Shown in pieces: positions 37,701 through 64,000 of a DNA stretch of 64,000 nt (positions are counted from its first letter, which is position 1; every line of letters begins with the position of its first letter). The translations under genes were made by a program, and so were the position numbers. Source of the stretch: Caecitellus pseudoparvulus (Eukaryota; Protista; Bigyra: Bicosoecida); the NCBI GenBank assembly GCA_965644315.1, contig CBFFRQ010000079.1, positions 300,175 through 364,174 of the forward strand, in the 5' to 3' direction. The notes beneath the pieces are model-generated. The model saw only the letters and a program-made list of their open reading frames with translations, did not search any database and was not told where the DNA came from.

Positions 37701-40700
37701 ACGTGCCCTGCTGGGCTTTGTCGAGGACTGCAAGAGTGCGCTGCTGGACAAGGTGGGCTCTGCTGCCTCGGCTGCTCAGTCTGCCATTGGGGCAGCCGTG
37801 TCAGCAGGTGGGCACCCGCTGACACTGTTCCAGCAGCTGGAGTCACACACTGGACTGTGGTTCCACTTGAAGAAGGTGGCGCCCGTGGAAGCCACCATTG
37901 CAAACGCGGGGGGTGCTGCAGCTGGCTTTGCCGCTGCTGTGGAGAAGGATGGGGCTGCGCTGTCAGGACTGGTGTCGGACGCCGCTGCAGGCGCGACCTC
38001 CAAACTGGTTCCCGCTGACCACAAGCGCAAGACTGTGGCGTCTGTCGCCCTGGAGCCGCTGTCTAGCAAGCTGCGCACGCCCGCAGGCGACATCGTGCTG
38101 TCCCTGTCCGCTGGGGATGCTGCAGGGCTCATTGGGCGCACGCTGGGCGACCAGCACCAGCCCGACTCCCTCAGCCGCATCAACGACTGGGACTACGACA
38201 TCAACCCCCCCGAGCGATTGCAGCAGGCTGTGACGTTCCTGACAGAGAACCCACAGCGGCTGCGGGCTGCAGTGGCGTATTTCGCGGACCAGGACACGTC
38301 TTCTGAGGTGCTGGAGCACATTCAAGGGGGTGGGGCGGCGACTCAGGTCATGGAGCGTCTCATGGCGTCCTCGTCCGTCGTGCAGCAGCTGACGCCCATC
38401 GCCACGAATGTGTTCAGCTTCCTGACCAACCTGCAAGGCACGGTGCAGACGCTGCTGTCGCACACTTCTGTACCGCCACACCCTGCCCACCTGGCGCGGG
38501 CCACTGCCCTGGCCTACGCCAAGGAGGAGGGGTTCGTGTCCAGCTACTCTATCCTGCTGCAGCGGTTGGGGACACTGTTCGGGGGCATCGCGCCGTTGCT
38601 GGGGACGCAGGTGGGCCCAGACCTGTGCAGGGGTGTGGGTGCAGCCTTCTTCATCATGGCAGGCTTGGCGTCCATGGACGCTGGCAGCTTTGACGTGGAC
38701 AGCCTGCTGCGTCTGTCTGACGGGGACGAGGAGGAGGAGGCAGAGTCGGCGGACCGCAGCCAGGGCGCCTTTGCGGGTGTGCAGGGCTCCGGCACCGCCT
38801 CAGGACAGGGGCACAAGGCTGTCGTGTCACACATCGGGCACTACCACGTGAGCACCATGCAGAAGTGCTTCGGCAAGGCGTGGCGCATGCTGGTACGACC
38901 GCCCACTGCGGCACAGGGCGCCGGGGCCGACCCGTCGGCCGCCGGCAGTGCAGCGGAGAAGTACGGCCCGTGGGTGGAAGCGCTGCGTGCGTCCATGGCA
39001 GCGGACTTCGAGTCAGAGTCGGTGCTGACCACTGACTCCATTCCTCGTGAGTTCCGCCAGATGCTGGCGGTGGTGAAGCACTTGCGTGCGCTGCTGCCGC
39101 TCATCATCGACGGAGTCGTGACGGCGTCCAACTTCACCCTGAACACCACCATGACCCTCAAGTCTCTGCAGGTGGCGCAGGGGGCAGATGAGTCCGGCAT
39201 CTCCCCCACCGCCATCCTCACCGCACTGCGCTCCAGCCCCCTCCTGTCTGTGCACGACATGGCGCAGGAGCTGGTGAAGCTGCTCATCGACGCGCGCCTG
39301 GTGGACCCCTCAGTGTCCACCGCCATCAGCGACAAGGTGGGCAAGGTGTCTCGCATGACGGACAGCATGGCCGCTGCTGCCACTGGCGCAGCCAAGACTG
39401 CCACTGCGCTGAAGGAGGACGACAGGGTGGCCTCTGAAGCCCTCTTCAACGCCATCGTGTCCCTGCTGCACCTGGTGCTGTGCTCCACGGGGCACAAGCT
39501 CATGCGTGCCGCAGACATCTCTGCGTCAGTGCAGGCTGAGGCGGAGGCTGCCAAGCGCGCAGCTGCCTCCACCGCCGCCGACGCAGTGGACGACGCCGCA
39601 CTCATCAGCCAGCTGGCTGAGACTGCGCGCCAGGAGGCCATGCGCACAATTAATGAGCGCCTGGAAATGCTCATGGGCGCGCTGATGCTGGAGGCCAAGA
39701 ACCAGCTGCCAGGCACTGCCACTGCGTACTGGAGCCTCGTGTCTGCGGCGACAGCGGACGACGCCAAGGAGATCGTCTCTGCCGGTCTGCGCCTGGGCGA
39801 CAAGATGGGTCTGCGTGACGCAGCTTCCCTCATCGGTGTCGCCACGGGGCAGAAATCCTTCATGGAGGACGTGCGGTCGCTTGCTGTGGCCGCGTCGTGC
39901 AACCCTCGCATCGCGTACGGACTGGTGGGTCTGGCCACGGGCAGCACTGAGTTCCTCGTGGCAGGTGCCTCTGCCATCTGTTCCGCGTTCTCCGTGCCCA
40001 ATGAGGAGCACTTCGTCTCCATGGTGCGCATCATCCGCACCCAACTCAGCGACCTGGGCGCCTTCGTCCCTGTGGCCACCTCACTGGAGGTGTCTCCTGA
40101 CCTGCTGGCCGGCATCATGTCGTCAGCTTCAGGACCGCGCTTCGCGCGGTACGTCGCGGCGAACTCTAACTTCGTCTCGTCCGTGGGACTGTCCACGGAC
40201 CTCGTGCCCACCGCCGCAACGCTGGCCAGGCTCGCACATGGCGACGTGGAGGTGGCAGCCGACCTGCTCAAGGATGACCCGGCCTGTGCCGACGTCATGC
40301 GTGCCATCGAGCTGACGCAGGCCACTGACATCCACTCTTTTACGCGGCTGCTGCAGGAGCTCACGGCCAACCCTGCCTTTCCGCGCATTGTGCCACTGAT
40401 GGACTGCTGGGGCAGCGTGCTCCTCCCTGTGCCCACTGCAGCGCACATCATGTCTGCACTGCTGTCTGGGTCCTTCGCCGGTGCCTCTTCTATCAGCCTC
40501 ATGATTGACATTGCTGCAAAACTGAGCGTGCCAGTGCACCACCTGCTGGCGGTGCTGGTGGATGTCATCCTGCAGCACGTGGAGACTCGCGAAGCCAAGG
40601 AGGTGGGCAAGACGTCAAAATACTCAGAGAGCTCCTCCACCATGCAGGCTGCGCTGCACTTGGGCGGCGGCCGCGAAAAGGTGCTGCTGAGTGCGTCCTC

Positions 40701-43700
40701 AGGCGCCCACTTGGTGGCGCTGCTGTCTGAGAAGGTGCGTCATGACGACAACTGCAACACCCGCATGCTGCACGGCGTGATGGCTGACGCGGAGCCGATA
40801 CAATACGCCCGCCTGCACGCGCGGTACCTATCCAAGAAGCTGGCTTCAGCACGCCCCACGGCGGGGAAGAAGGTAAAGGCCTCCCAGGCAGTGGAAGAGG
40901 TGGCGTCCACTCCTGTGTCGGAGGTGAACCCTCTGGCCCTGCCGCTGGACCGTGATGGGCACGCTAAGGCGTTCTTGGCGTCCCAGATCGGCGTGCGGGA
41001 CTGCCTGGCGGTGCAGCGCTCGCTGGATATGATCACACCCGGTATGAAGTACATCATGTCGGAGGTGGACCCGTCCGAGGAGAAGGGCGTGGTCCCGAGT
41101 GACAGAGTCCCTACCGCCTCTGGGTCAGTCATCCGCTGGCCAGCGCCCAAGGATAAAGATGCCATGAAGGCGGGGGATGTCACGACGTCACCTGCGGAGG
41201 TGCACAAGGTGTACCGGGAGGATGTCGTGCCCCCCGTCATCACCGGCGTGCAGATGCCCTCCACCACGATCGGAGACATTCACAGCGACCCCGCTCTGCA
41301 CGCCACTGCCCCGTCCTTGACGGAGGTGCTGGGCGACTCTGAGCTATGTGGCGGCACACGGGAGCAGCAAATTGACACCCTCACAGCGTGGCTGTCCTCG
41401 CTACAGGCAGCGCTGGCGGCAGATGACGTAGAGTCGTCCACTGGCGGCGGCATGGCGGCTGAACGCTCCAAGAATGGCAGCAAGGCGCCCGAACAGGGCC
41501 TCGCAGACCAGCACGTGGACGTGCTGTGGCGCATGGCAGCCTCGGCGGCAGAGGAGTTTGCCAAGGACCCCCTGAAGACAGTGCTGGGGCCGGAAGAGGC
41601 GGAGGTGTCGGGGGGGCAGGACTTTTCCAGCTACAGTCTGCAAGGGGAGAGTGAGCGCCCCGTGCGCAAGTCGCTGCGGGGCAAGTACCCCTGGCTGCAC
41701 GTGGGGCACAAGAGCCCCCCACCCAGCATGTTTGTGCATGGGAATGGGTCCAAGATGCAGGTGTGGTCATACCATGCTCCCGTCTCATCCCTGCTCGCCC
41801 TACTGAAGGTGGTTATGGGCCACCCTCTGCGCAAGGCAGAGCTGCCGTGGGTGTTTACACAGCGCAGCGCGGCATTCCCAGGCTCCAAGGGGCCCGTTCT
41901 GGATGCCTTGCGCCGGTACAGCATCACATATGTGGCGGCACCATACAATGCGTCGGCCCCCATCTCCCCCGCAGAAGCCACGGTTCGGGTGGCGTGCAAG
42001 GAGATCTCCACGGGGACCTCTGACCCCGTCTTGCTGCCCACTCTGCCAGGTGGAGACCGAGGCAAGGGCCTCCTGACCTCCCTTGCTGCCATGTTGGACT
42101 TCTCAGCCATGTCCAGCCGGCTGCGCCGTGAGATCATGGGCATGGCGCGCAAGGCTGCTGCCAAGGCCGGCACAGCAGTCTTGGAGGCAGGGCGTGAGAA
42201 GTTGGCTGACCTGCAGGAACGAGGCGCAGCGCAGCGCGAGGAGATGCTGCAAAAGGCTGAGGGTGCCCGTGCCGCTGCCACCGCAAAGCTGGGCGAAGTC
42301 GCCGGCCAAGCGGCTGAGTTGAAGGACAAGGCTCTGCAGCATGCCTCAGCAGCACAGGCAAAGGCCGCTGATGCCCAAGCAGGCTTGCAGCGCGCCATGG
42401 GGGAGGCAGAACATCACGTGGCCAGCGCAGCGCACAATCTGCAGTCTGCAGCTGGCCAAGCAGCTGGCTCTCTTTTCCCCGAGGACTTGAATCTGGAAGC
42501 CCTGGCGCACAAAGTGAAGGACGCCAAGCCTGCGCTGTGGGACTCCACGGAGCACGTTGTGGCAGGGCTAGTGTCTGCTGCGGGGCACTTGAAGCAAGCC
42601 ACCAGCGCCCTGCGGCAGCGCATGGAGGCCGGTGCAGTGAAGCTGCGGTCCACTGTGCAGCGCCTGAAAGACCAGCTGGTGCAGGAGCTGGACAGAGTTC
42701 GGAAGACGGTGGACCCCGTGCAGATGGGGGCGAACCGCTTGCGCCAGCGCGAGATGCTGCTGCTGTCTAACGTGTTCCGGCGCTCTACCATGCGCAGCGC
42801 AGTTCTGCGCCGGGAACTGCTCAAGCGCGTGGCGCGTCTGCGTGATGACTTCGAGACGACGCTCAAGGTGGAAGCAAAGGAGGCCAAGGCTGCGATGGCA
42901 GCTGCAGCCTCCAGCGCGCAGGAGCAGGGCGCACAGGCTGGGAGTCGGGCACGCCTGGCTCTGGCAGGGGCAACAGATGGCGCCGCAGTGGCTGCAGCAT
43001 TGGCAGCGGGTGGCGCGTCGCCCGCAGTTGCCGATGACGGGAGCTCCCCTCTGCCTGACCAAGGGCAGCCTAAGGATGTGCTGCAGCCTCAGCGCCCACG
43101 TCCAGGCAAGTTGAAGCAGTTGACGCCACGAAGCCAGGCGCTTGCGCAGGGTGAGGCAGATGTGGCTGCATTTGAGAAGTCTGCGCTGGGCAAGCCGGCC
43201 GCCATTGCCCCGGCTGTGCAGGCAGGCGAGGCCAGTACAGCTGTCGTGGCAGCTGCTACGAGTATTCCCCAAGCCAAGGAGGCTCTGCGCCTTCTGGAGA
43301 GCGGGACCACTGAGGAGTTGGAGGCGTGGGGGAAGGAGCAAGGCATCCTGGACGCTGCTGGGTCACTTCGGGACGCGTTCGTGTCCACGATGGGCCGCAG
43401 CATGACTGCTGTCAAGGCCCGTGTGCTGTCTGCGAAGGAAGCTGCGGACGCTGTGGAGCGCAAGGTGGAGCAGAGTCTGTTGGCTTCGGAGTCGCACTTG
43501 CTGGATGAGGATGACGGACTGCTTGCCCAGGCGGAGAAGGCAAAGAGTGCTGTGTCCAAGAAGGTAGAGTCAGCCGCATCCAGACTGCAGAAGCGCTTAG
43601 CGAGGAACGGCGCTGCAGCACAGAGCGTGCTGAAGGAGCTGTGGGGCGGCGGGCGCGTCTTCGGGCGCCTCATGACCGTGAAGATGGCAACGAGCGTCAT

Positions 43701-46700
43701 GCAAAGTGCCATGGACTTGGCGCAGGCGCAGCTCGTGGCAAAGTTAGGCCCTGCAGCGGGTGTTGCTTCAAAGAACGCACAGGAAGCGGCGAACGCCGCG
43801 GCATCCGGCGCCGCTGCCGCGACGGCGAAGTACCTTGAGCCGGAGGTGCTGCAGCAGGCCATGCGCACACTGCAGGACATGGCGTTGAAGCTGAAGCTGA
43901 GTCTATCCCAAGCCCGCGCACTGGCTGACACCGCTTTGATCACCCTGGAGAAGGAGGAGAGTAAGGTGAGAGACTTGGTGGAGAAGGCGGGGAAGGAGGC
44001 TGGGGAGAAGGGCAAGGAGCACGTGGAGGCGGCCATGCGCCGGTTCGTGGTGTCGGAGTCCGAGGCAGAGGCGTGGCTGAAGATGTGGGAGGACATGATG
44101 TTCCAGCAGGCCAACTCGTTTGGCGAGGACACCTCTGACGAGGACTCCTCCAGCGACGAGGAGGAGTTCCTTCAGAGCGTCCTGCCTGGGACCTTCAAGG
44201 ACGAAGCGCTCAAGTCCATGGCCTCGGAGTTCGACACGCTCGTGGACGATGTGAAGGTTAGCGTGGAGGACTTGTTGCCGGCATCTAGGCTGAGCAAGGG
44301 CGGCCGGCCACCGAAGGATGGGCTGCGTGACGCCGAAATCCGCTCCTCTGTCATCGCCGACGAGTTGCGGACGTGGAACGAGTCGGGGCGCATCCCTCAC
44401 GCGCTGGTGATGAGCCTGCTCACCAACATGGTGGCAGACGATGCCGTGTCCACCTCTGCGCCCGACCTAGACAAGCTGTGGGCGCTTACGGTGATGAACA
44501 AGCCCATGAGCTTCGTTGCTTTCGACCGCGATGCTGACATCGGCACAGCCCTCATCCCTGACAAGCGAGTCTTCCCGGCGCTGCGGGCAGTGCACGTACT
44601 GGCGCACATTACCAGCGTGCACCACGCACGGGCCATCCCCGGCCTATCCGAGCTGTTGCTGCCGCTGACCATGGCCCTGCGCGTGCCTCCCGAGAGCTTC
44701 ATGACCCTGGCCATGATGATTTGGGGCGATGTCGCGGCGGTGGACTCAGCCGCCCGCTCCTTCCTGCAACTGCCTTCGAACACAGCTCGTCTGTTCATGG
44801 GTGCCTCCCTGCCTTCGTCAGCCAACAGCTTCAAACAGCTGAAGGACCCGAAAGACATTCGCAAGCGCCAGCTGCTCATGGGCGCTGTGCGAGGCCGGCG
44901 GCGGGATTTGTACAAGCTGGGCTTGCTGATTTTCACGGGCAACCCCGACAGCACCAGCCCAACGACAGACCTTGTGAGTGCTGGGGCTGCTGCACAGGCT
45001 CAGGCTGCCGCCAAGCCCAAGGCTGCCCCAACTGGCGGCGCTGCAAGTGGCGGACCCAGCGCCCGGCTGAAGCGCCAGGCCAGTAAACGGCAGGCGTCAA
45101 AGCAGAAATCTGCTCGCACGCCCCATGCTGCAGCAGGCGCTGCGAGCGACCATATTGACGACACTGACGACGTGGGGAATCCAGGGTCTGTGACGGATGC
45201 CCGGGAGGGCTCAGGCCGAGGCAAGAAGGCAGGCGCGTCGGCCAAGGTGGCGCCAGAGCATGCGGCACAGTTGCCATCAAGTCCGCCAGGTGCAGAGCCA
45301 GATGAGTCCTCCAGCACACGCAAGCTGCAAGCTGAACCAGCACGGGGGTCGACTGCCAAGAAGCAAGAGACGCAAGCCGGACCAGCAGCACAGGCTGGCA
45401 ACGCTGGTACGCGGGCGAAGCGGCCCATCCAAGACCACCTGTACGGCTTGCACGACGACTCGGCAGCCCGCATCGTGTCTGAGCTGCTCAAGGGCAAGCA
45501 CGTGCGCAGTCCGGCGCTGTTCGTCCAGGAGTGCAACTTCCTGCGCCGCAACTACGAGACGCTTGATGTGTTCCAGCACTCCACGGCCATGGAGCGGGTG
45601 ATGAACCCCAGCTACCGCCAAGCCCAGGTGCGCTTGTTCACCCTGGACACGTTCTTGCGTCTGTGGGCCATGCTAGCAGGCGATGGGGGGGACCTGGGTG
45701 ACATTGACTACGTGGACACTGCCCTGCACGATGCTGTGTCTGGCTTTGCCCCAGTGCAGTCGGGAGATCCCACGGCGGCACTCATGTCTTCACCAGTCTG
45801 CCGTGAACTGGCCTCGGCAGCTTCAGGCGGCGGCGTCGGCTCTTCCGCCGCTGGGCGAACGACAGGTGTCCGACGCACCACCTCGTCAGCGTTTGTCAAC
45901 CGCGACTTGCCTGACATGTTGCAGCGTCTGTCACTGGCGGCGTTGTCCCCAGCGCTGCAGGGCATGATTCACCTTCGAGACGGCCGCGTCGGTGCTGGCA
46001 TTGACGAGCTGACCAGCATCATTTGCTCAGTGCGCGACCATGTGAAGGACCGTTCGGCTGCTGCTGCGGGCGCGTTTGGGGTCGGCACAAACCTGATTGT
46101 GTCCAGCGTCGGCTCCCCGCCCACAGACAGGCTGCACGGGCGAATGTTGGTGTATTTTGCGCTGTCTGTCATGCATGCGGCATGTGGGCGCACACTGTCC
46201 ATGCACCGACGCAACATGTTCGAAGGGCTCGCCTCGCCAGCGGTCGTGTCGGCTTACTCCATGCGCTCCACTGTGCGGCGGTGGGGCAACCTGGCCAGCA
46301 TTGAGGAGCTGGAGAGAGTCGAAAGCCTGCCTGCCAGCGAGCGGTTCAAGCTGGTGGAGCGCATGCTGCAGCGCGAGGTGGGCCCCTTGGACAAATTCCT
46401 GGACTCGCAAGTAGAGGAGCTGGAGGAGAAGTTCCCCGACTCGTACGACGACGCGAAGCAGTCGTATGACCTGGAGACGGAAGAGGGCAGGGCGGACATG
46501 GCCATGCATGCGTTGCGAGAGGTGCGTGGGCCCGTCACAGACGATGACATCCAGTACATGCTACGCCTGCAGCACACGGCGCGTTCCGAGGCCACCTACA
46601 TGCAGCGAGTGCTGTCCCTGTCGGTGTTTCAGATGGCACAGATGACCTCTGCAGCCAATGCCCACGGCAAGGCACCCGGGAGCGAGGGCAAACTGAGTGC

Positions 46701-49700: not shown

Positions 49701-52700
49701 GAGCCTGGTGTCATCCGTTCCCCCTGTGCCGTTGTCAAAGGCAGACATCCTGCGGAGTGCAGAAGGTGGATCTGAAGGTGCAGCAATTGGCCGTCGCCAG
49801 GTGTACTTCAAGCACCCCACGGATGTGGTGGAGTCGCAGCTGGCCGTGCCGGAACCACTCCCGGCTGTCGTGTCTTGCTTGCCGGACGACAAGCCCATGC
49901 CCACCATCTGCGCAGGTACGGCGCTGCTGCACCACGGAGTGACGGTGGCCAAACCCCCCACCGCCCGCCGGGCAGTGAAGCGGGCGGACGGTGTTGGCGC
50001 AGGGAAGACAGCTCGCACAGGGCACGGCATGCGCTCAATGCGTGCATCTACATCTCGGTCAGTGCAGAGCCGACACAGTGTAGCGACTGAGCTTGAGCCC
50101 GTCGAGGTTGTGGAAGGTGCGGCACCTGACCTGGACATGTCGTCGAGCAGCGATGATGAGGAAGGTGGATTTGCGCTGTACGACGATCACGAATCTGTGC
50201 AGCCACAGCAGGTGTCCACTGTCGGGGCGGCAGCTGGGGGAAAGGACTTCAGCCACCTCAGGTACGAAGATGGGGAGGAGGAGGTTGGGGACTATTCCGA
50301 CCTCAAGTACATGCTGGACACAGTGGACGTGGGTGGTGCTGGGGGGCGCTTCGCCGTGGGTGCGCACATGGCTGCCGCCATGACGCGAGGCAAGTGGTAC
50401 TGGGAAGTGACCCTGCATGACCTGCCCCAGGACTGCTCCCTGGGCATCGGTATCGCCAAGTACGAGTTTGTGCAGGCCATGTCTGCGGGCCACGCCGAGG
50501 GCGAAGGGCTCAAGCGCGCGTGGAACAACAATGTGTGGCTTGTGAGCGAGGAAAGCGCCCAGCACGTGTCCATTGCTCCCGACGGCATCCAGCTGTGCAA
50601 AGGCTTCAACGTCTCCTGCTTCAGCAGTGGGTCTCGCATCGGCATCCTGCTGGACATGAACGAGCGCCAGATGTTCATCACTGTGGATGGCTGGACCACC
50701 TCCAAGTGCATGGCCTTTGGCAAAGAGGCATTGCACGAGGCAGACCTGGCAGTCGTGCCCTTCATTCAAGGGCGCACGACCACCACCGAGCAGGCCCTGC
50801 ACGTTCAGTTTAGCTTTGGCGCTGGGGTGTGCCCCACTCCGCTGGCTCACTTTAAGAATGAAGACTCGCACCTGGGCGCTGCGGTGGGAGGTGAGATGTC
50901 TGAGGCGAAAAGCCCTGCCGGGCTGGGGTTCCAGCCCTACGGCAGGCGCCTGCGGCAGGTATTCGGTGCCATCAACACGCGCTTCAATAGGGGCCTGCTG
51001 CTGCTGTACTACGGCAATGCGCGCGTGTCTGAGGACTGCGATGTGCGGTCGGTGCCGTTGAAGGTGTCCGATTCTGGCGGCGTGCTGACATCAGCTCAAC
51101 AAGCTGTTGTGGTCATGCGAGATGCCCTCGTGTCGGGGGGCCGCCACTACTTTGAACTCGAGTACTGCCGCCAGCCTGGCTGCGATGCTTCCTCTCTGCA
51201 GGAATTGTCCATCGGCTGGGCCGATGTCGCCTTCCAGGGCAACAGCGACGAAGCTGGTGTCGGGCACGACGCACACTCGTGGGGCTGGTTGCCCTTTGAA
51301 GCTGGCACCAGACACGGCTTCTTGTACCAGCATGATAGGTTTGGGACCCTTGACCGTGACTTTGAGGATGTGAAAGTTGGCGATGATGGTGCCATGCCAA
51401 GCAAATCCTTGGTGTTTAGCTGTGCTGTCGATGTGGATGCCCGCATCATGATGTGCACGGTCAAGGGTGACTGGTCCAGCCGTGCTTTTGTCGCGTTCCA
51501 GCACTTTGATTTCGTTGAAGGGCTCATGCCTGCCTTCTCCTGCCGAACAAGCACTACGCCCGTCCCACACCGGTTCGTCTTCCGACTGGGTCCGCCTCTG
51601 ACAGCCGCAGAAGACCTCCTCGGGGGCCCGCCTGGCTTCTCGCCCATCGCAGAGGAGGTGGACCTCCCACCCTCATCCGCTGCCATGCAAGAAGCGCTCA
51701 GTGCCCGCCCAGGACGGCCAAGTGCCACAGGTGCAGGGCATGGCGGCGGAGCGGCAGCCTCCGGACGGGACAGCTTCAGCAGCTCTGAGCTGTCCTTGGA
51801 CTTGGCCGGTATGGGTGCCGGTGGCGAAGAGATGCCTGCAGACTGCATGCGCCTTGCACCATCTGCGCCCAATAGTATCGTCACGCTTCCAGCCCCACAT
51901 CGCCGCCTGGGTCTGCAGCTGCTGGGGTCGCAGCTCTTGTGTATCGATGACAACTTGAGTGCGTGGGGTGCTGGTGGCTCGTTCCCCACCGCCGGCATGC
52001 CACAAGGGCGAGTGTGCGGTGGTTTGTGGTACGTGGAGATGCACATGGTGCACGGCAGCCACAATGACGTGCAGGCTGGGTGGGCAGATGAGGAGTTCGT
52101 GGGAGACTGTGCGAATGGATGTGGCACGGGGGACGATGGCCACTCCTGGGGTGCAGATGGAGGCCGCAGCCTCTTGTGGCACAATGGAAGAAAGTCGTGG
52201 GGCGTGCGATGGAACGATGGCGACACGCTGTGTTGCTTGCTTGACGCCACCAACCGCAAGATGTGGTTTGCTGTGAACGGCGAGTACACTGACAAGTCCC
52301 TGGCGTTCCAAGGTGACGAGATGGACTTCTCAGGGTCGCTGTACCCCGTGTTTACTGCATCATCCTACTCCGATGCGCTCATGCACATGCGTGTACGCCA
52401 GGAGGACTTTGCATTCGCCCCAGACTTTGGCGCAGGCAAGCATATACCTGTGGAGGAAGTGGAGGCGCCTGAGCGCCTGCGGGCCCTGTCGGAAGCCATC
52501 GACTTCAACACAGCCATGTTCGATATTCACGGCATTGCAACATCAAGGGCTGACGATGAGCACTGTGGTGGCAGCATCGTGCCACACCTCATCGTGCCAC
52601 ACCCGACGTCGTCAGTGGCCACTCTTGAAGGCATCACTGCCGCCGCTTTTATCCGGAACTCGTCTTCGGATGAAGGTCACGCCTGCTTGCGCCTCGTTAC

Positions 52701-55029
52701 AGGCGACTCCCGAGGTTCTGTGCGCGTGTGGCAGGTGAATGCCGGCTTGCAGTACATCCAAGAGCTTGGCCACGGCGTGCAGACGGAAGGCGAAGCAGTC
52801 AAGTCTCTGTGCCGTGCTGAGCGGGAGACGTACGAGGCGCGGTCAGTGGCTCTGGTGGGCATTGACAAGGTCGGTGTCTGCGTGTGGGGCATCTCCAACG
52901 ACCGTGTGGAGGGCGACTTCGCCCCTGTGGAAGTGCACGATTCGGAAGCAGATGTTGCAGGCTCAGGCGATAGCATCTTGCCGGGTTTCTTGCGAGAGAT
53001 GGACGTGCCGCCTGGACAGGGGTACGAGCCCATTCCCATCAGGCTGGAGAAGCTGGACATTCCGTTGACGGGGGAGGACGGCAAGTGCTTCATGGATGCT
53101 CGAACGCTCGTCCAAAGCACGAAGCGGTATTCCACTGGGGAGGAGCCAGCCCTTTTCGTGCAGACTGCGTCGAAGTCCATTGTGCCTTGGCGACTGACCC
53201 ACCTGGATGCCGAGCCGCTGGGCGCCACTACGAAGTGGCTGAAGTCGGCCAAGCACATCACCGCCAAGCTGCTGCCAGGGCGCCTGAGCAACTTCACAGC
53301 GCACTGGCCCCTCAAGGATCCAGACACCGGCGACTACGACACGAAGTACTTGCTCACTGCTGGGCGGGAGATCTACGTCTTACACTGCGGCAACGGGTAT
53401 GGGCTGTTGGAAGACGGGGACGAGGCGACCCTGGAGAAGGAGCGACAGGCACGCCTGCTGCTGCACGGCCTCATTCCCGATGACGGCATCCCCGTCGGCA
53501 TCGTGTCGTACTTCTTTGCCTTCCCTTCTGCATTTTTCGGGGCCACGCGAGAGGTGCGGAACAGACTGGAGCCAGACACAGACGCGTCCCGCGAGTTTGC
53601 CTCAGCGCCAGTGACGGGGCTGCAGTTGAAGTACAAGAGCCAACTGCCCCTCATTGACCATGTCCCTGCCAACCAGAAGGCTTGGGGGGCTCTGTCGTGG
53701 TTTGCGACGGTGACGAGCACTGGTGGCATCTACTTCAGCAATGTCACGGAGCAAGCGCGTGCTCTGAACCACTTTGCCGCCGAGGTCATCGAGCTGTCTA
53801 CAGGGGAGCGCATCACGCAGGTCTCGTCCATCGCGAACCCCCCGGCGGTGAAGTGGGAGGCCACTGGCGAAGACGGCAAGGTGCAGCGGCAGGTGTGGCT
53901 GGACTACGTGGCTGCTGCCACAGAGAAGCAGGCGTCCATGAGCGAGGAGGAGGAGACCGTCGTGGTGGATGCGCCGCACCCCAGCATGCCCCCTCCCAAC
54001 GACGTCATCCTGGTGGGCACGTCACATGGGCGTCTGCTGGCTGTAATCGGCGCGCCGCGCTCTGCTCATGTCACAGAGTCCTTGTGGATGGACTGGCGGG
54101 TGGTGGCTGAGATGGCACCCCAACACGAGGGCAGCATCACGCAGATCGTGCCCATGAGCAAGGACTTCCGACACAAGGTGGAACCGTGGATCAGCTCCTC
54201 CATGCCGACACTGCGGGTGGACAGGCTGTCCGCTGCCATTGACTTCCTCTTCATCACCACTGGCGCCGATCGCAAGATCAAGCTGATGACTCTGGACATG
54301 GACAACAACTTCATCTGCTTGTCTGAAGCAAGCCACGCGGAGGATCCCTCCACGCAGGTGTCCAAGGTGGACTTGAGCCGAGTGGGCGCCGGGCATCGGC
54401 CCTCGGCGGTGGAGGCCCATGCGGAGCATTCTGCGACGCTGACGGGCTCAGGTGCGAGTGGCCTGCACGAGTCATCATCGTCTGTACCGCAGGACGGCGC
54501 TGTCGAGTCCAAGGCGCCGCCTCCTTTGCCCACTCCTGCGTCGGGTCGGGCAGACAGCCCAGGCGGATTTGAAGCAGAAGAGAAGCAGAAACCTGGCAGT
54601 GGGCAAGCCAAACCAGCCCAGGGCGGCTCTCCCGGCCGCCTTTCCTCCAGTGGCAACCCTGGTGAGGATGATGAGGATCTGGATGAACACAAGGAGGACG
54701 CCATGCTGAAGATGAGCACCATGCGCCTGCTGACAGGGCAGAGCAAGAAGAAGGGCTTCGGCTCACCGGACTCCAAGGGACATCCTCAACGTGGCTCGAC
54801 CATGTCGCCCAAGGGCGGCGACCAGGTGGCAGAGGCGGAGGACTACTTTGACTTTGCAGTCATGGACGACAGCGATGACGCGCTGCGGTATGCGGGCAGC
54901 GAGAGCCGCAAGGTGCTGCAGAGCAAGTACGCACCCGAGTTCAACGCTGGCGGGCCAACGCGCCCCCTGCCCATGGTTTCTGGCAGGCGGAAGTACCAGA
55001 TCCTCGGCATCGATGGGCTGTTCATTAGG
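28774..55029 (+). CDS. Giant (~8,700 aa) multi-TM protein with long helical/coiled-coil regions, five SPRY domains and a beta-propeller-like C-terminal region; 3'-truncated by telomeric repeats
   Basis: Uninterrupted ORF of >26 kb with strong GC3 bias; first ATG at 28774. SPRY signatures are GKHYFEV (~48270), GKWYYEV (~49135), GKWYWEV (~50390), GRHYFEL (~51140) and GLWYVEM (~52021). There is no stop before the TTAGGG array; the formal ORF ends at 55989. Confidence 0.85.
29083..29151 (+). other. Probable 69-nt in-frame, stop-free intron in the giant gene
   Basis: GTGCGG donor, CTTAC branch-like motif, C-rich tract and CCGCAG acceptor. Removal deletes VRRRRVRITTLHTSHLPPNPPPQ and rejoins a hydrophobic helix (LCFLALLLTISM+VIPSLYSLY). 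Confidence 0.75.
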
Positions 55030-55898
55030 TTAGGGTTAGGGTTAGGGTTAGGGTTAGGGTTAGGGTTAGGGTTAGGGTTAGGGTTAGGGTTAGGGTTAGG
55101 GTTAGGGTTAGGGTTAGGGTTAGGGTTAGGGTTAGGGTTAGGGTTAGGGTTAGGGTTAGGGTTAGGGTTAGGGTTAGGGTTAGGGTTAGGGTTAGGGTTA
55201 GGGTTAGGGTTAGGGTTAGGGTTAGGGTTAGGGTTAGGGTTAGGGTTAGGGTTAGGGTTAGGGTTAGGGTTAGGGTTAGGGTTAGGGTTAGGGTTAGGGT
55301 TAGGGTTAGGGTTAGGGTTAGGGTTAGGGTTAGGGTTAGGGTTAGGGTTAGGGTTAGGGTTAGGGTTAGGGTTAGGGTTAGGGTTAGGGTTAGGGTTAGG
55401 GTTAGGGTTAGGGTTAGGGTTAGGGTTAGGGTTAGGGTTAGGGTTAGGGTTAGGGTTAGGGTTAGGGTTAGGGTTAGGGTTAGGGTTAGGGTTAGGGTTA
55501 GGGTTAGGGTTAGGGTTAGGGTTAGGGTTAGGGTTAGGGTTAGGGTTAGGGTTAGGGTTAGGGTTAGGGTTAGGGTTAGGGTTAGGGTTAGGGTTAGGGT
55601 TAGGGTTAGGGTTAGGGTTAGGGTTAGGGTTAGGGTTAGGGTTAGGGTTAGGGTTAGGGTTAGGGTTAGGGTTAGGGTTAGGGTTAGGGTTAGGGTTAGG
55701 GTTAGGGTTAGGGTTAGGGTTAGGGTTAGGGTTAGGGTTAGGGTTAGGGTTAGGGTTAGGGTTAGGGTTAGGGTTAGGGTTAGGGTTAGGGTTAGGGTTA
55801 GGGTTAGGGTTAGGGTTAGGGTTAGGGTTAGGGTTAGGGTTAGGGTTAGGGTTAGGGTTAGGGTTAGGGTTAGGGTTAGGGTTAGGGTTAGGGTTAGG
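55025..55898 (+). repeat. Proximal telomeric array: TTAGG + (TTAGGG)144 + TTAGG
   Basis: Perfect repeats span 55030-55893 (864 bp), flanked by partial TTAGG units. The G-rich strand is on +, i.e. pointing toward the right end. Confidence 0.98.
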
Positions 55899-56719
55899 CA
55901 ACTCACAATGCATTTCACCTCGGCACAGCTTGGCACCGTACAGCTTGAGCGTCACACGGGCGCCCCACAATGCACCTCTGCACATGTAGGACGCCACAGC
56001 GGCTACCGCTTGGCGCGGATTCGCAACAAACACAGGCTTGCACCCGTTATATCTGCCGCCACTTGCTAGGGCAGGTCCCTGCCCGCTCCAATTCATCATC
56101 TTGGCCCTCCTCCGCTACACTTCATCCCTTGCTCGCCAGCGCCAGACACCTGGGGCACACCAGAGCACACCCAGGCATCCGCGCAGTCTTGACAACAGAT
56201 CATAATCCAAATTCCTCACCCACCTCCTCTGTGGCCCTCATAGGCCTCTCTGCGCCCTTCATGAGGTGTGTGCTCCGCCTCTGCGCGGGAACTCCGGCCG
56301 GGTGCGTGGTGCGGAATTCGATCGCGCACACCAGCACCCGTGCGCACACACGCGCCCGCGCCACAGAGCGCATCGCGCGCATCAAGGGGGATACAGAAAG
56401 GAAAAGGACCTTCTTCTTCAGCCCGTCACGCCCTGGTTTCGTGGTGAGTGAGCTTGCTTCATCGTCAGCCGCCATCCGGGCCGCGGCCGTGCAGCACTGC
56501 GGCTGCACACGCGCCGCGGCCCGAGGCACGCTCCCGCTCACTCCACTGCTACTCGCAGGCTGTGTAGTAAGTAAAAGGTAAGGTCTTGGGCATCTGCTTG
56601 GGCTACCGTGGCTATCACCACGCTTCCACACAGGTTCATCACGTCAGGACACTCGTGGAGGGTAGACGCGGCCACAAGCGTGGCTGTTCCACTCCCCGCC
56701 CGCACGCCTGCGTTCCGCC

Positions 56720-59700
56720 TTACTCCTCGCTCTCTTCACAGGAACCATCGGGCCCTTCCCCCTCACCATCAGTGTCTGCATGGGCTGGCTGAGGCCCCAT
56801 GAAGTGCTGCAGCGTCCTCTGGACCTTGCCCTCCGTGGACGGCACTCGGCCAGCCTTGGCAGGGAAAAGGTGCGTGCCCTGCGGCGAGTGCGGGGCCTGC
56901 GCTGTGCCGCGTGGCCGCTGACCGCACTGGCTGCGTGCGGCCAGCAGCGGCGCCCCGCGCCCATGTACTGCCCACCACAGGTACTCAGCATGCCTCTGGA
57001 CAGCAAGGTGGTGGGCATCGGTCATACGCAGCATGTAAGTGACTGTGACCCGCCACGCCTTTGCTGTGAACTCAACCGCGCTGCGCAGGATGTCTTGCCA
57101 TACAGCTGGGGCACGGACACGGCAAGGACCAGCACGGTGGACGAGAGGTGGGGGTGGGAGAGGACAGCCGCCTCTTTCATAGAGACAAGCTGCTCTTCGT
57201 CGGCCAGCCCCCACCGGTGAGGCCACTGCCCGCAGAGCAGGAGCCTGTGGAGGTCCTCGAGGTCCCGCACGCTTCGCCGCGCTGGGTCGGGGGCACGAAG
57301 GACGGCGTGGCAGATCTTGGGGATGGGCAGGCACTGCACTTGGCCCGCCGCGGGACTCGGGCACAGCTGACCTGTTGGCCAGTTCTCTGAACTTGGTCAT
57401 CGTGTGTTGGCGTGCCATGGTGAGTTCGTGGTGGGTGCAGTGCAGCAGGATGTGCACGTGCAGCTGTACATCGGTGTTGAGTCCGCAAATCGGACAGCAC
57501 TCGTACAGAGTGGCACTGTCCCCCCATGAAGAAGCTGTAAGGTCTGGAAGTGATGGACCATCACCTGGTGGGCCTGTCATCAGGACAGACCCAGAAGAGG
57601 GGGTTCACCCTGTGTGGCAGTGGATGTAGCCACACGAAGTGCTGCGCACCAGGCCCAAGATGATAGGGCCTGGGCTTCTGCACTTGGGGGATTCGGCTGT
57701 CGGTGGTGTAGTGGGCAGCTGCACTCGGCACTGCCTGGGCTACATGAAGATACGACGCGAGGACTTGGCGACGCAGGGCCCAGGGGGTGTCTGCCGTGAA
57801 GGCCGGGGGTTCGGCCATGGACGACGTCTCGCTGGCAGCCACCCCAACCACCGCAGACCTGTGGAGGCCCGGGGTGGTCTTAAGTCCGGCAAGGACTTGG
57901 GCAAGGGCTGTGCAGCATGCTCAGAGCCAGGTGCACATGCAAGCCGAAGCTGTGCAAGGTCTGGCATGCAGCCCATGAGCCAGAGGTCCAAGAGGGCATG
58001 CAGTGCCCACGGAGCAGGGACACTGGCAGCCCGGAGTCGACCTCCATCAGCAATGGTGTCGACGATGAAGGTCGTCGACATCGAAGCAGGCATAAGGTCA
58101 AGGGCCTGCGGGATGGTCAGGCACAGAGCTCGGGCAAGAGGTGTCCGAGTGCAGCATCCGGAGAGCCTCTGACAAACATCCCAGTCCGCAGTTGCGTGGA
58201 GCGGATGTGGGCAGGCAGGACTCCGCATAGAGCCAGCTTGGCGTAGCTGTGGGGGCGCATGAGTGCACTCTGCGAGCCGACTTGGGTCCTGTCCAAGGCG
58301 AGGGCGACGCCGCGGTCAACATCGCGCAGCGGAAGCAGGGAACTGTTGGCTTGGGTGGACAGCATGTAGTCGGCGGCTGACGTGACAGTGGCATACCCAA
58401 CCAGGTGCCGCTGCTGCACATCGAGCCAGGTGGCACTGAGCAGCGCGCCCGCAGTGAACTCCGGCTTGGATGCAAGCAAGCCCAGCTTGTTGCAGGGTAA
58501 GTGCACGGGTCTTGGCAGGATGTTCGGACATCGGCACACCCAAGTAGTGTACTCGGCCACCCGTTGGATGGACTTGGTGCCAACCTTCAGCATGCTGCCC
58601 GCTTGAGGGCAGCCGAGCGCCACACCAACTTCTTCCTTTCACTCGACTGGTGTCCGGCTGCCTCGCACGGAGTTGGCAAGGATCATGACCCCGGACTTCG
58701 ACGGGTTGATGGCAAGGCCAACCTGGGCAGCGATGGCCTTCACCTCTACGAAGATTCGGTGCAAGGCCGTGGCAGACGTTGCGATGCAGGCCAGGTCGTC
58801 TGCATACAGGGTGTGGGTGACATGGCCTGCTGGTGTTGGGATGCCCACTCCCTGGATGCCTTGGAGGGGCATCTCGGGAGTCCTTGCGACAGCACATCTA
58901 TCGCAACCTTGAAGAGGAGGGGGACAGAGCTCCTCCTTGGGGGACACCATTGCTGACAGGAAGGGGGCGACAAAGACCATGCGCGTGTTGATGGAGACCG
59001 TCGCCTTGGACATGCACTCCTTGATGACGGCCAGGAGTGGCGCAGGAGGGAGGCAGCCTCAAGGATCTCTGTGATGGCTGCGTGGCTCACAGAGTCGAAT
59101 GCTCCCCGGAAGTCCACGAAGAGTACCAGGACTTGCACTGGCGCTGTTGACTGTCGCAGTGGCCCTTGATCACCTCTTGGAGAGCCAAGATGTGCTCATG
59201 CGTGTTGCGGTGTCGAGTGAAGCCAGCCTGCTCCTTCGACACCCATGTTTGCATCCAGGACTCCAGGCATGCAGCGGCCACTGAGAAGAAGAGCTTCGCA
59301 GGAGCGGGGGGCGGCATACAATCACGGGGTATGCGAGGCCGCCCAGCTTCACTCGTCTTCTTGGGGATGAGTGACCCAATGCCTGCATGGTAGTCTGGCG
59401 GCAGGTGCCGTGTTGCAACGCTTGGATGACGGATTGGGAGTAGATGTCTTGGAAGCCTGGCCCAGCATACTTGATGTGCTCTGATTGGAACTTGCCAGAG
59501 CCTGGGTGTCGATGCAAGCTGAGGATCCCATGAGGACTTTGACTTGCTTCTTGGAGGGAAGCCATGTCACTGGCGGGGTGAAGGACTCTTGGGCTGAGGG
59601 AAGGAACCTTGCCAGCCCGGTACTTCAGCGATGTTGGCCTGGGCTTGTTGTGACTCAGGATGCCAGACATCTGCTTGGCAACCTCCTCTTCACCAGATCA

Positions 59701-61930
59701 GGAGGAGATGAGCACTCCCTGCATGGACTTCACGGACCTGATGGGAGCTCGACGGGCTCGACGACCTCGACCTGACAGGCGCTTGATGCGAGGTGGGCAG
59801 TGAAGGGATCCGTGACAGCGAGTTCCCTCAAGCGTGCTCGGATCCTGGACAGAGTGACATGTCGCTTCTTCTTCACAAGCCTCGTGCACTTCCGCATTGC
59901 ATCCTTGCGGCATTGAAGCGTGGCGTGTAGCTCTTCAGTGGCCATGGAGATTCCCTCTCGGATGGCACGGGCGTGGTCTGCTGAGGATGCCGACCGGTGG
60001 CAAGTGCGAGCTCGGTGCAGCTTGGCAATGGTCTTCCGCAGCTTGGACACGCGTGCAGTCATGGACTTCTTGAGCCCGCTGGCCGCCTTGATGTCCATCT
60101 TCAGCTGGGGCAGAGGGTCACGGGGGTCTTGGCCTTGCGATGTGTGTCCATAGCCGCAGCTTCGATAGCACCGTTGAGAAAGGATAGGGCTCGTGGCGGC
60201 GCTGCCTGTCTGGAGCGCGGTGGCCCGCGAGCTGAGGGATCCTCGAAACATCGCTTGCGCTGCCAGCCCAGCCTCTGTCGCTGAGGTCCACCAGGGTGGC
60301 ACCGCCTGTACATGGGGGCTCTTGGATGATGTCCACACTCGCTTGGCAGGCTTCACTCGGACTTCTGCTGCAACAAGATGATGGTCACTGAGGACTAGTC
60401 GAGCGGCACTCTTTTTCGTCCCGCTGGAGAACGTTGTTGTGATGTGCAGTGGTCTGCTCAACATACTGTGGAGGTCCTCAGCTCATCAGGATGTGGTCCA
60501 GAGCCCGACCATACCTGTGGTGGCAGGCCACCAAGTCCGGCTGGGATCAGTGGGCCTTGCTCGCAGAGGAGCTGCATCTGCAGGATGTCTTCAGTGGGCT
60601 CGGGAATGCCGGTCCGGTTCTCCCAGTGATCTGCTCCCCACGTGCCTACCCCTTCGTCACCTGGATGAGTGTTCAAGTCACCCATGATGACAATCATGTG
60701 GGTGAGGCGGAGCTGTTGAACAGCAGACTCAAGCTGCCGCCAAACCTCTTGCCGGTACGGAAGCTTCGTGTCCGGATCAGCGACTGGCTTCTTTCGCTGC
60801 CAAGAGTGCCAGTTGGGTACGTACGTGGCTATGATGGCGATGGGTTGTGGGCTTGCAGGGATCGAGCAAGCAATTATGCAGCGACCATCAACGTCGAGGC
60901 CCGGGATCACTGAGCCATTGAGTCTTCGATCAAGCAGCAAGGCAACCTCACTCCGCCCGACAGGCCGATCAGGCGGGCTTGGGCGGAAGCATTCAAGGCC
61001 CATGACTTCCGTGTCGAGCAGGCCGTGCCCCCCAGGCTCTGTGACACAGAGTGCCAACATGGACGACGCACTGCACACAGACTGGACACAGGTGACGACA
61101 TCGTGGACACACTGGCCGCAGGAGCCGTGCACATTCCAAGCAGCAAGTGCGAGTGTCATGTGTCTTCCGCGGCCGACAGGGGTATGGGGTGCATCGCTAC
61201 TGATCTGGTCGGCGACTTGTACAGATGTTGGGATGAGTGACAGTATGGGGTCAACCGTCTTGGCTCTCTCATCGGCAGCTGCTTGTTGGCGCGTGGTGCG
61301 GCCTACAGGGAGGTACACCCGTGTTGTCTTGCCAGTGATGAGAGTCTTTGGGTAGACAGTCTCGTCCTCAGCTACGAACGGGAGTGGGGGAAAGTCAGAC
61401 CTGAGGGACAGCATGGCCAGCCGCACTCTGTCTTTGAAGGGAATCGGCTTGCCACTCAGCGGGGAGGATGAGACACGGTACACAGACTCAATGCCCATCG
61501 AGTCGAGTGTGTTCAGGCAGCCGTCGATTGGAATGTTGGTGCTCTTGAAGGGTTCGTCAGGGTTCCACAGTACAAGTGTGGACTTCTCAGCGTTGACGAC
61601 AATGAGCTGAAGGTGGGAGACACCTCCAGTGTCAACCAAGCTGAGAGCAAACGCGAAGTACACCCCAGCAAAGACTTTTGCCTCGGAGGTCATCTCTTTC
61701 TCTGCCTTGACATCAACCAGGCAGTGTCCAGACACTGTGCCGCCTTCAAGTTCCCGATGGCCCTCGTTGATACGCGTGAGCAAGAGATGAAGACCAGGGA
61801 GGAGCACAGGTGGACAGGCACTGGTGAGTGCTGCATCATCAGGCGCATGTCGGTACAGGAACGATTGAAAGATGGTCAAGCTTGTCTTGCTCGGTGGTCG
61901 GCATGGAAGGTTCTGTTTCACAGACAGCAT
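56720..61930 (-). pseudogene. Retrotransposon ORF2/pol (APE endonuclease - RT - CCHC), broken by many frameshifts in this sequence
   Basis: APE: WNVHG (~61130), LCVTEP, TYVPN, GDLN (60671-60682), SDH (60381-60389). RT: EQAGF (~59225), VDFRGAFDSVSH (~59082-59117), GVPQGGALSP/LLF (~58915-58950), LYADDL (YADD 58795-58806), GLAINPSKS, YLGV (~58540). Knuckle: CPICGLNTDVQLHVHILLHC (~57437-57496). The motifs are spread over all three frames. Confidence 0.88.
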
Positions 61931-63266
61931 GGACCTCCGAGTCTGGTGTGCCAGGGTGACGCGCGCTGCTCTTCTTCAACACAGCACAGAAGGATGTCTG
62001 CGCCGCTTGGATGGTGGCTGCGTGTTGAAGAAGGACAAGGTCATCGTCATTGAAGAGTGGCTCTCCTGCTGCTGTTTCAAAGCAGGCCTGGACACAGTGT
62101 CGTTGGTCCTTATTGCGGAACGCGTGCGCAGAGGCGAGGAGTTGCTGCAAGGGGGAACCCAAGTCAAGGTTTGCCTGTCCAAGCCGTGCTGGTCGGCGAC
62201 TGCAGTCAGCAAGTTTTAGCAGCGTAGTGGGTGCCGTGTTTGCAGGACTTGCAAGAGGTGGCTGTGCCCCGCTGCCCGATAGTGCCGCAGCTGTCGGGGA
62301 CACGGGAGGAGGTCTCTTGCGTGGGCTGGGCGAGTCCCATCTGCTGAAGGTCGGGCGCTTGACTCTGGTGGACGGAAGAGGGACATGTTCAGGGGAAGGA
62401 GCAGCTTGGCCTGACGACTCGGCGGGTGCAGATGGAGGGGAGGGCGCTGTGGGGCGAGTAGTCACGACGCCCTCCTTGAACAGTTCAGCAAAGCGCCGAG
62501 GAGGAGAGCTCTTTGTCGATGGCTTGCGTTTGCCCCTCCGTGTCTTCTTCTTCTTGGGACCGCCTTCAGCAAGGGGCTTTGGCAGTGTGCTTGGCAGCTT
62601 GTCGACAGAGGCGTCATCTTCTGGAGAGACGGAGTGTCCGACAGGCTTTGGAGCACGCTTGGCGATGGAGTGAGTGTTGGTGACATGGGCATGGACAAGC
62701 TTCAAGATCTTGGACACATCCCCACTCTCACAGGCAATGTTGGTTGCTGCCTCAGAGATCTTTTGAGCAACCTTCACTACAGAGGGAGGGGCGATCACGC
62801 TGACCCTGGCGCGCTCTGACGTGAACTGCCGCGTGTTGGAGTACACCACGCCCACAGAGCCGCCCCCCTTCAACATGATGATGAAGTCTTCTCGCACAGC
62901 AGCAGCAACGCGCAGGGACTTGGCAATGGCGGGGCCTTCACCGTCACTCGGCAGCGTGACAAGGAGAATGGTCTGCCCTGGTGCGGATTGTTTCAGCGCG
63001 GAATTAGCGCGCACCATCACAGGAGCAGCTCCAGGAAACTCGGCCTCCAGCTCATCTCCGAAGATGCCAAGCCACTTGCGGACGAAAAATGATGCATCTT
63101 GGCCATCCGTGCAGTCAATGTCCATGCCACCGAGCTGGAAAGTCCGGGCTGCCCCTCGGCGTGACATGTCAGTCAGCACGCCTGTTCGTGGCCGCCCTGA
63201 CACACGCTGCTCCAGGCACTTGTCCGCGAAGAGCACGCCGAGGACTTGGCTGGCCTTGGATGACAT
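61839..63266 (-). CDS. Retrotransposon ORF1 (or N-terminal part of a single polyprotein), ~475 aa
   Basis: First ATG at 63266. Globular-looking N-terminal ~200 aa, a basic NLS-like PKKKKTRRGKRK and a Pro/Ser-rich linker. Overlaps the next frame at 61839-61930. No gag CCHC knuckle was seen. Confidence 0.65.
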   Translation of the reverse strand: MSSKASQVLGVLFADKCLEQRVSGRPRTGVLTDMSRRGAARTFQLGGMDIDCTDGQDASFFVRKWLGIFGDELEAEFPGAAPVMVRANSALKQSAPGQTILLVTLPSDGEGPAIAKSLRVAAAVREDFIIMLKGGGSVGVVYSNTRQFTSERARVSVIAPPSVVKVAQKISEAATNIACESGDVSKILKLVHAHVTNTHSIAKRAPKPVGHSVSPEDDASVDKLPSTLPKPLAEGGPKKKKTRRGKRKPSTKSSPPRRFAELFKEGVVTTRPTAPSPPSAPAESSGQAAPSPEHVPLPSTRVKRPTFSRWDSPSPRKRPPPVSPTAAALSGSGAQPPLASPANTAPTTLLKLADCSRRPARLGQANLDLGSPLQQLLASAHAFRNKDQRHCVQACFETAAGEPLFNDDDLVLLQHAATIQAAQTSFCAVLKKSSARHPGTPDSEVHAVCETEPSMPTTEQDKLDHLSIVPVPTCA

Positions 63267-63486
63267 GATGATGAAGCAATGGTTTCGGGCAAGCAGTGGT
63301 GCAGCGTCCAGCCGGAGCCGCACTTAGCACTGCGTGGGGAGCGTGGCGTGCGGAAATCGCACTGCTGCTCACCCGCGCACCCAATGCAATGCACTAGCGC
63401 TGTGCAACACCACACTTGGGTGCACGAGCGCCTGGATTAGGCATTGTTAGCAATGCACAACCTATGATTAGGTTGACATTTGGAAA

Positions 63487-64000
63487 GTTAGGGTTAGGGT
63501 TAGGGTTAGGGTTAGGGTTAGGGTTAGGGTTAGGGTTAGGGTTAGGGTTAGGGTTAGGGTTAGGGTTAGGGTTAGGGTTAGGGTTAGGGTTAGGGTTAGG
63601 GTTAGGGTTAGGGTTAGGGTTAGGGTTAGGGTTAGGGTTAGGGTTAGGGTTAGGGTTAGGGTTAGGGTTAGGGTTAGGGTTAGGGTTAGGGTTAGGGTTA
63701 GGGTTAGGGTTAGGGTTAGGGTTAGGGTTAGGGTTAGGGTTAGGGTTAGGGTTAGGGTTAGGGTTAGGGTTAGGGTTAGGGTTAGGGTTAGGGTTAGGGT
63801 TAGGGTTAGGGTTAGGGTTAGGGTTAGGGTTAGGGTTAGGGTTAGGGTTAGGGTTAGGGTTAGGGTTAGGGTTAGGGTTAGGGTTAGGGTTAGGGTTAGG
63901 GTTAGGGTTAGGGTTAGGGTTAGGGTTAGGGTTAGGGTTAGGGTTAGGGTTAGGGTTAGGGTTAGGGTTAGGGTTAGGGTTAGGGTTAGGGTTAGGGTTA
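63487..64000 (+). repeat. Distal telomeric array G(TTAGGG)85TTA, running to the window end (probable chromosome terminus)
   Basis: Perfect TTAGGG repeats from 63488 to the last base, in the same orientation as the proximal array. Confidence 0.98.

Follow-up and report, generated by a model that had tools for sequence, protein, structure and literature searches.

Programmed chromosome fragmentation in ciliates and nematodes puts new telomeres on non-telomeric DNA with little homology. Among telomeric retroelements, MoTeR1 encodes a restriction-like endonuclease, and the HeT-A/TART and TRAS/SART elements end in poly(A). In Plasmodium falciparum, telomeres are fused inside subtelomeric coding regions, with five such cases in the 3D7 reference alone, and all nine healing events anneal at one template position and share the same starting bases (PMC5550746). 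Healing by TTAGGG on a single T, beside telomeric retroelements, has been described for Magnaporthe oryzae (bioRxiv 10.1101/845669). HeT-A can cap broken Drosophila ends, and TRAS/SART of Bombyx coexist with telomere repeats (review PMC4700185).

The junction described here lies in the window, the whole 64,000-nucleotide stretch of Caecitellus pseudoparvulus DNA that was analysed, which makes up the final 64 kb of contig C79; the eukaryotic assembly comprises 215 contigs and 30.6 Mb. It resembles the P. falciparum cases in that, at a number of ends of the genome, repeats are joined within the coding sequence of truncated members of multicopy subtelomeric genes, but in C. pseudoparvulus the overlaps of 0–3 nt vary in phase, short first units are frequent and LINEs are involved. 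As in M. oryzae with its MoTeR elements, TTAGGG stands on a single T, telomere-embedded retroelements leave internal tracts and telomerase-type repeats cap the ends; however, the healed Magnaporthe case cuts an element, whereas a host gene is cut on C79, and the window element differs from MoTeR1 in carrying an APE-type domain. Like HeT-A/TART and TRAS/SART, this element is a telomere-specific non-LTR element. Unlike them, C. pseudoparvulus elements end in a telomere unit, and the first cap at the C79 junction consists of repeats and not, as in healing by HeT-A, of an element; in contrast to Drosophila, which has no telomerase, a telomerase gene is present. Ciliate and nematode fragmentation differs in that no breakage signal is seen here, the sites are not clustered and there is no sign of separate germline and somatic genomes. 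The C79 junction is an ordinary case of subtelomeric telomere healing, a new instance of a known process, and its value is that it is one of many natural healing events in a single genome with pre-break sequence readable from paralogs.

The first 14 kb of the window hold housekeeping genes (Tsr1/Bms1-type and Sas10), followed by a TIG/cadherin giant gene and then by a SPRY/EF-hand giant gene located in the subtelomeric zone of the contig. For the Sas10 protein, identity is 99% with proteins from marine metagenomes and 96% with a protein of the Symbiodinium sp. KB8 assembly. From the second giant gene to the contig end, the features are as follows.

27163–28193, no strand assigned: subtelomeric repeat block 5′ of the giant gene, with 72–83% matches near many contig ends.
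28774–29082, + strand: giant gene exon 1, 103 codons from the first Met, the predicted start.
29083–29151, + strand: giant gene intron, GT-AG, 69 nt and in frame in the window copy, 71 nt in the C198 paralog.
29152–55025, + strand: remnant of giant gene exon 2; 8,727 amino acids are kept of a ~9,875-amino-acid SPRY/EF-hand/transmembrane protein and 1,148 are lost.
52440–55025, + strand: repeated part of the gene, found as 5′-truncated fragments on at least 15 other contigs at 91–94% identity, several of them with stops or frameshifts.
55025, + strand: breakpoint, the last base (T) common to all nine fetched copies, with a 1-nt overlap with the telomere phase.
55026–55029, + strand: first added bases, TAGG, making one 5-nt unit, a signature of addition to a naked end.
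55030–55898, + strand: internal tract of 144 perfect TTAGGG units and a final TTAGG, a full-length telomere that is now internal.
55899–63486, − strand: telomere-specific APE+RT non-LTR element of 7,588 bp, 5′ end towards the tip, with many small indels.
63487–64000, + strand: terminal telomere, 85 units to the contig end.

The open reading frame at 28528–55989 on the + strand contains no stop codon before the telomere array. The predicted protein of ~9,875 amino acids has membrane segments at its N-terminus, several SPRY domains, a pair of EF-hands and a further membrane segment at its C-terminus; the residues encoded by 28774–45000 gave no Pfam match. A complete paralog at C198:27690–57600, whose exon 2 is open across 9,835 codons, is 96.0% identical to the C79 copy across 26.5 kb; the two differ by a single indel, of 2 nt, in the intron, and the 25.9 kb of the gene side have none. 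The C198 copy extends 1,148 codons beyond the junction point, encoding a SPRY domain, a pair of EF-hands and, at the C-terminus, a hydrophobic segment (membrane anchor). The same 1,148 codons were also found on C107, and the metagenomic homolog P0023 (53% identity) has the same C-terminus as the C198 copy. Since both C198 and P0023 continue beyond the junction to a common C-terminus, the homologs do not end there, and comparison with them demonstrates that the distal sequence has been lost from the C79 copy. The 5′ part of the gene is present in the assembly only on C79 and C198, and the genes upstream of the two copies differ; C198 was therefore rejected as the other haplotype of the C79 locus and is taken as a paralog at another end.

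At 55025/55026, GGG CTG TTC AT passes into TAGG, which is followed by the 144 perfect TTAGGG units (55030–55893) and the closing TTAGG (55894–55898). No stop, UTR or degenerate-repeat zone is found at the junction, and the first-pass annotation, which had a 26-kb ORF running directly into TTAGGG repeats, was correct on this point. Its statement that there is no subtelomeric repeat is accurate for the junction itself, but from ~52440 on, the ~2.6 kb leading up to it belong to a block with copies on at least 16 contigs, and the gene is subtelomeric. The final 2 kb ahead of the junction align at 88–94% to at least 15 other contigs. The repeats are joined directly to non-telomeric DNA with the G-strand towards the tip, as in telomere healing.

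The pre-break sequence, TTC ATG GG in nine of nine fetched copies, encodes Phe-Met-Gly and continues into the SPRY domain. Most of these nine lack the 5′ part of the gene and begin near 52440. The ancestral codons being TTC ATG, the ‘Ile-Arg’ codons with which the first unit had been said to overlap are made of added DNA. The telomere was also said to have formed on a pre-existing TTAGG seed; this motif is absent from all nine copies, which have only the one T in common with the repeat, and no TTAG, TAGG or GTTAG is present either in the 500 nt that precede the break or in the lost part. Even the 1-nt overlap carries little information, as any last base but C fits some phase, and was not accepted as significant; the Leu-Gly read-through into the array was set aside as well, two of the three repeat frames being open. 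Pre-break sequence could be read from another copy at 16 junctions, a set without three further rows in which the reference was a junction in its own right. Five of the 16 show no overlap (0 nt) with the telomere phase, five an overlap of 1 nt, two of 2 nt and one of 3 nt, and the other three have 2–8 nt of filler. Healing in C. pseudoparvulus needs almost no homology. Neither the junction flank (55000–55025) nor the lost SPRY region was found in metagenome scans, and no public contig with the flank was found. At many junctions (L028, L038, L039, L053, L055, L058, L070 and L077) a short C/T-rich stretch stands directly before the first telomere unit; at two junctions whose reference is known, the pre-break sequence does not template this stretch.

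The short first unit recurs in the genome. In a sample of tracts drawn irrespective of the first unit, TTAGG comes first in 13 of the 17 preceded by a non-G base, the C79 tract included, in two of the ten preceded by GG (13/17 versus 2/10, p=0.007) and in one of the 15 that follow an element’s intact 5′ end, and it makes up 7 of 1,365 interior units (~0.5%). A count of 18/44 was set aside, as it contained sites chosen for a short first unit. Genome-wide patterns, sorted by eye, gave nine short and seven regular starts for long tracts after a non-G base; the short unit is found at 56–76% of naked starts, and just before element 3′ ends short units amount to 4/23 (17%), compared with 0.5% inside tracts. 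In this genome, healing commonly produces a 5-nt first unit, which is added in the process. Because a random join, or an invasion inside a tract, would give a short unit in only ~0.5% of cases, the C79 junction looks like true addition to a naked end. The first-unit error can be measured and depends on the preceding base, and through it one can test directly whether new telomeres are started by telomerase or by the resident LINE enzyme. Targeted literature searches turned up no paper on this bias, a weak indication that it is new.

The same gene block is interrupted at four other ends, at the equivalents of positions 53367 (C32), 53386 (C151), 54757 (C137) and 56066 (C111). An element follows after one telomere unit at C32 and C111, and after two or three at C137 and C151. 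The five cuts fall at five positions over 2.7 kb, with no common motif by inspection. On C135, a TIG/cadherin paralog is interrupted ~74 codons before its end by a 19-unit tract, and this survey of contig ends, which the first-pass annotation had suggested, thereby yielded interrupted genes on C32, C151, C137, C111 and C135. In detail, the C135 paralog (C135:12200–12900, L078) of the window’s TIG/cadherin gene at 15324–26699 is cut near residue 3717 of 3791. In 30 of 39 sampled joints only 1–3 units precede the element; long first tracts occur elsewhere at C5, C134 and C188. A predicted telomerase gene lies on C77, with a TERT domain (PF12009) above cut-off (E 7e-21) in a 1,389-amino-acid frame.

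The two near-full copies of the giant gene are under purifying selection. Between C79 and C198, dN/dS amounts to 0.096 for the whole comparison and to 0.14 over the final 2.5 kb, with a dS of 0.12, and the 25.9-kb C79 exon 2 contains neither stops nor frameshifts. About 3% of point changes in exon 2 would create a stop, and with none present in 25.9 kb, neutral drift is limited to roughly 0.004 substitutions per site, provided that the truncated protein is not under selection and that the consensus is correct. An exon free of stops and frameshifts, together with a dN/dS of 0.10, suggests that the loss is recent. It was probably tolerated because of the intact C198 paralog, the two copies being presumably redundant. 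The C79 case shows how giant subtelomeric genes turn over in this protist. The spread as a subtelomeric repeat is limited to the giant gene’s 3′ ~6 kb, which have a common 5′ edge near 52440; along 52440–55025 the closest copy switches, as in mosaic gene conversion.

The element beyond the internal tract combines an endonuclease and a reverse transcriptase with a location at chromosome ends in fixed orientation, and so belongs to the telomere-specific non-LTR elements, with at least four joints far from ends among the 100 of 167 matches listed. Intact copies have a single 2,207-codon ORF with APE and RT; in one of them (L013:738–7358) this frame joins an ORF1-like part to the APE and RT domains, and some other copies are split near codon 130 by a 1-nt difference. 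Element 3′ ends terminate in a telomere unit, as seen in 167 GTTAG-element joints versus none for the reversed control, in a survey whose pattern requires GTTAG, of whose 167 matches 100 were listed, and which may miss the innermost joint at some ends. Among the matches listed, at least eight distinct element 3′ ends have a common CAATGCATT motif a few bases from the terminal telomere unit. Element-like 3′ joints more than 100 kb from contig ends (C18:155165, C30:253725, C38:234159 and C69:275700) are possible fossil ends or fusions. The window copy shows 72 of its 76 differences from the consensus in the 4.6 kb that adjoin the internal tract, and many of these differences are small indels. 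Its dense frameshifts are limited to 55899–60487 and look like consensus error rather than decay. As the proximal differences resemble a thinly covered consensus, few molecules may support the tract-to-LINE join, which is the least certain feature of the structure; the true end could consist of gene and telomere only.

Taken together, the locus is probably a real, recent and seedless healed truncation of a duplicated subtelomeric gene. With an intact paralog, a conserved C-terminus, no decay and a telomerase gene in the assembly, it agrees with the recent terminal truncation healed by a new telomere that the first-pass annotation had put forward. We consider it fairly likely that telomerase healed the end, with one slip at the first realignment, and built a telomere of normal length to which the LINE became attached later; the enzyme of the first units and the order of events are what we infer from the sequence. 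In such a course of events, a break or erosion would have taken the chromosome tip, including the last 3.4 kb of the duplicated giant gene, and exposed a 3′ end in CAT without a telomere-like seed. Telomerase would have added TAG and then realigned once, one base short, because only TTAG was available to pair, before adding regular units to normal length (about 870 bp). A telomere-specific LINE would later have used the G-strand as a primer and then been capped by telomerase. Some points count against this scenario: it is not obvious that a template like the human one would yield a 5-nt unit; the enrichment of short units before element 3′ ends (4/23) means that the LINE enzyme may make them; and a long first tract is the minority route, as 30 of 39 joints have 1–3 units.

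The strongest alternative, although we hold it to be unlikely, is that the LINE reverse transcriptase primed on the naked end and that abortive copying of its RNA tail, once or twice, deposited TAG and GTTAG, which then served as a seed for telomerase. The 167 joints at which elements end in a telomere unit are as this would predict, and irregular G-runs gather in short linkers and before element 3′ ends (4/23 versus 0.5%). Elements also sit directly on cut genes, with one unit, at C32 and C111; yet at C79 itself 873 bp of repeats intervene and the junction holds no element sequence. Moreover, the short unit is rarer before elements (17%) than at naked starts (56–76%), and its dependence on a G before the first TTAG (13/17 versus 2/10) could also result from alignment-limited telomerase. 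If true, a LINE-laid seed would make healing a two-enzyme process and the short first unit a LINE footprint.

Returning to healing by telomerase, later attachment of the LINE to the new telomere, one of the two histories offered in the first-pass annotation, fits better than the other, in which tract and LINE were acquired together. Such joint acquisition, by break-induced copying from another end or through a read-through LINE transcript with a long telomeric tail, seems improbable to us. The 127 and 149 units that precede the same element at C177 and C133, and six element copies without substitutions between them, would accord with it, but invasion inside a tract would copy regular units, among which the short unit makes up 0.5%, and no donor flank is present at the junction.

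Similarly improbable is an assembly or library artefact, a chimeric join of the gene to a telomere tract. The indel-rich proximal 4.6 kb of the LINE, with 72 of 76 differences, are like a thinly covered consensus, and the flanking 2.6 kb are a multicopy block; this doubt, however, concerns the tract–LINE join more than the gene–tract join. Compared with C198, the gene side is free of indels across 25.9 kb, no other block copy matches the C79 flank closely (6.5–8.6% different), and the orientation and short first unit fit the genome-wide healing pattern. Least probable are programmed fragmentation and a one-haplotype break with the gene continuing on the other chromosome, both raised in the first-pass annotation: related bicosoecids are reported to be diploid (bioRxiv 10.64898/2026.06.25.734631) and an allele could have been collapsed, but the five cuts are scattered with no reproducible site or common breakage signal seen, the 5′ gene part is confined to C79 and C198 with different upstream genes, and the assembly contains no allele contig of the C79 locus.

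The copy of the gene block on C144, from 32651 onward (L026), is split by a very AT-rich insert, probably a virophage-like element. Part of the sequence of this insert is shared with C133 (L067), which is LINE-capped.
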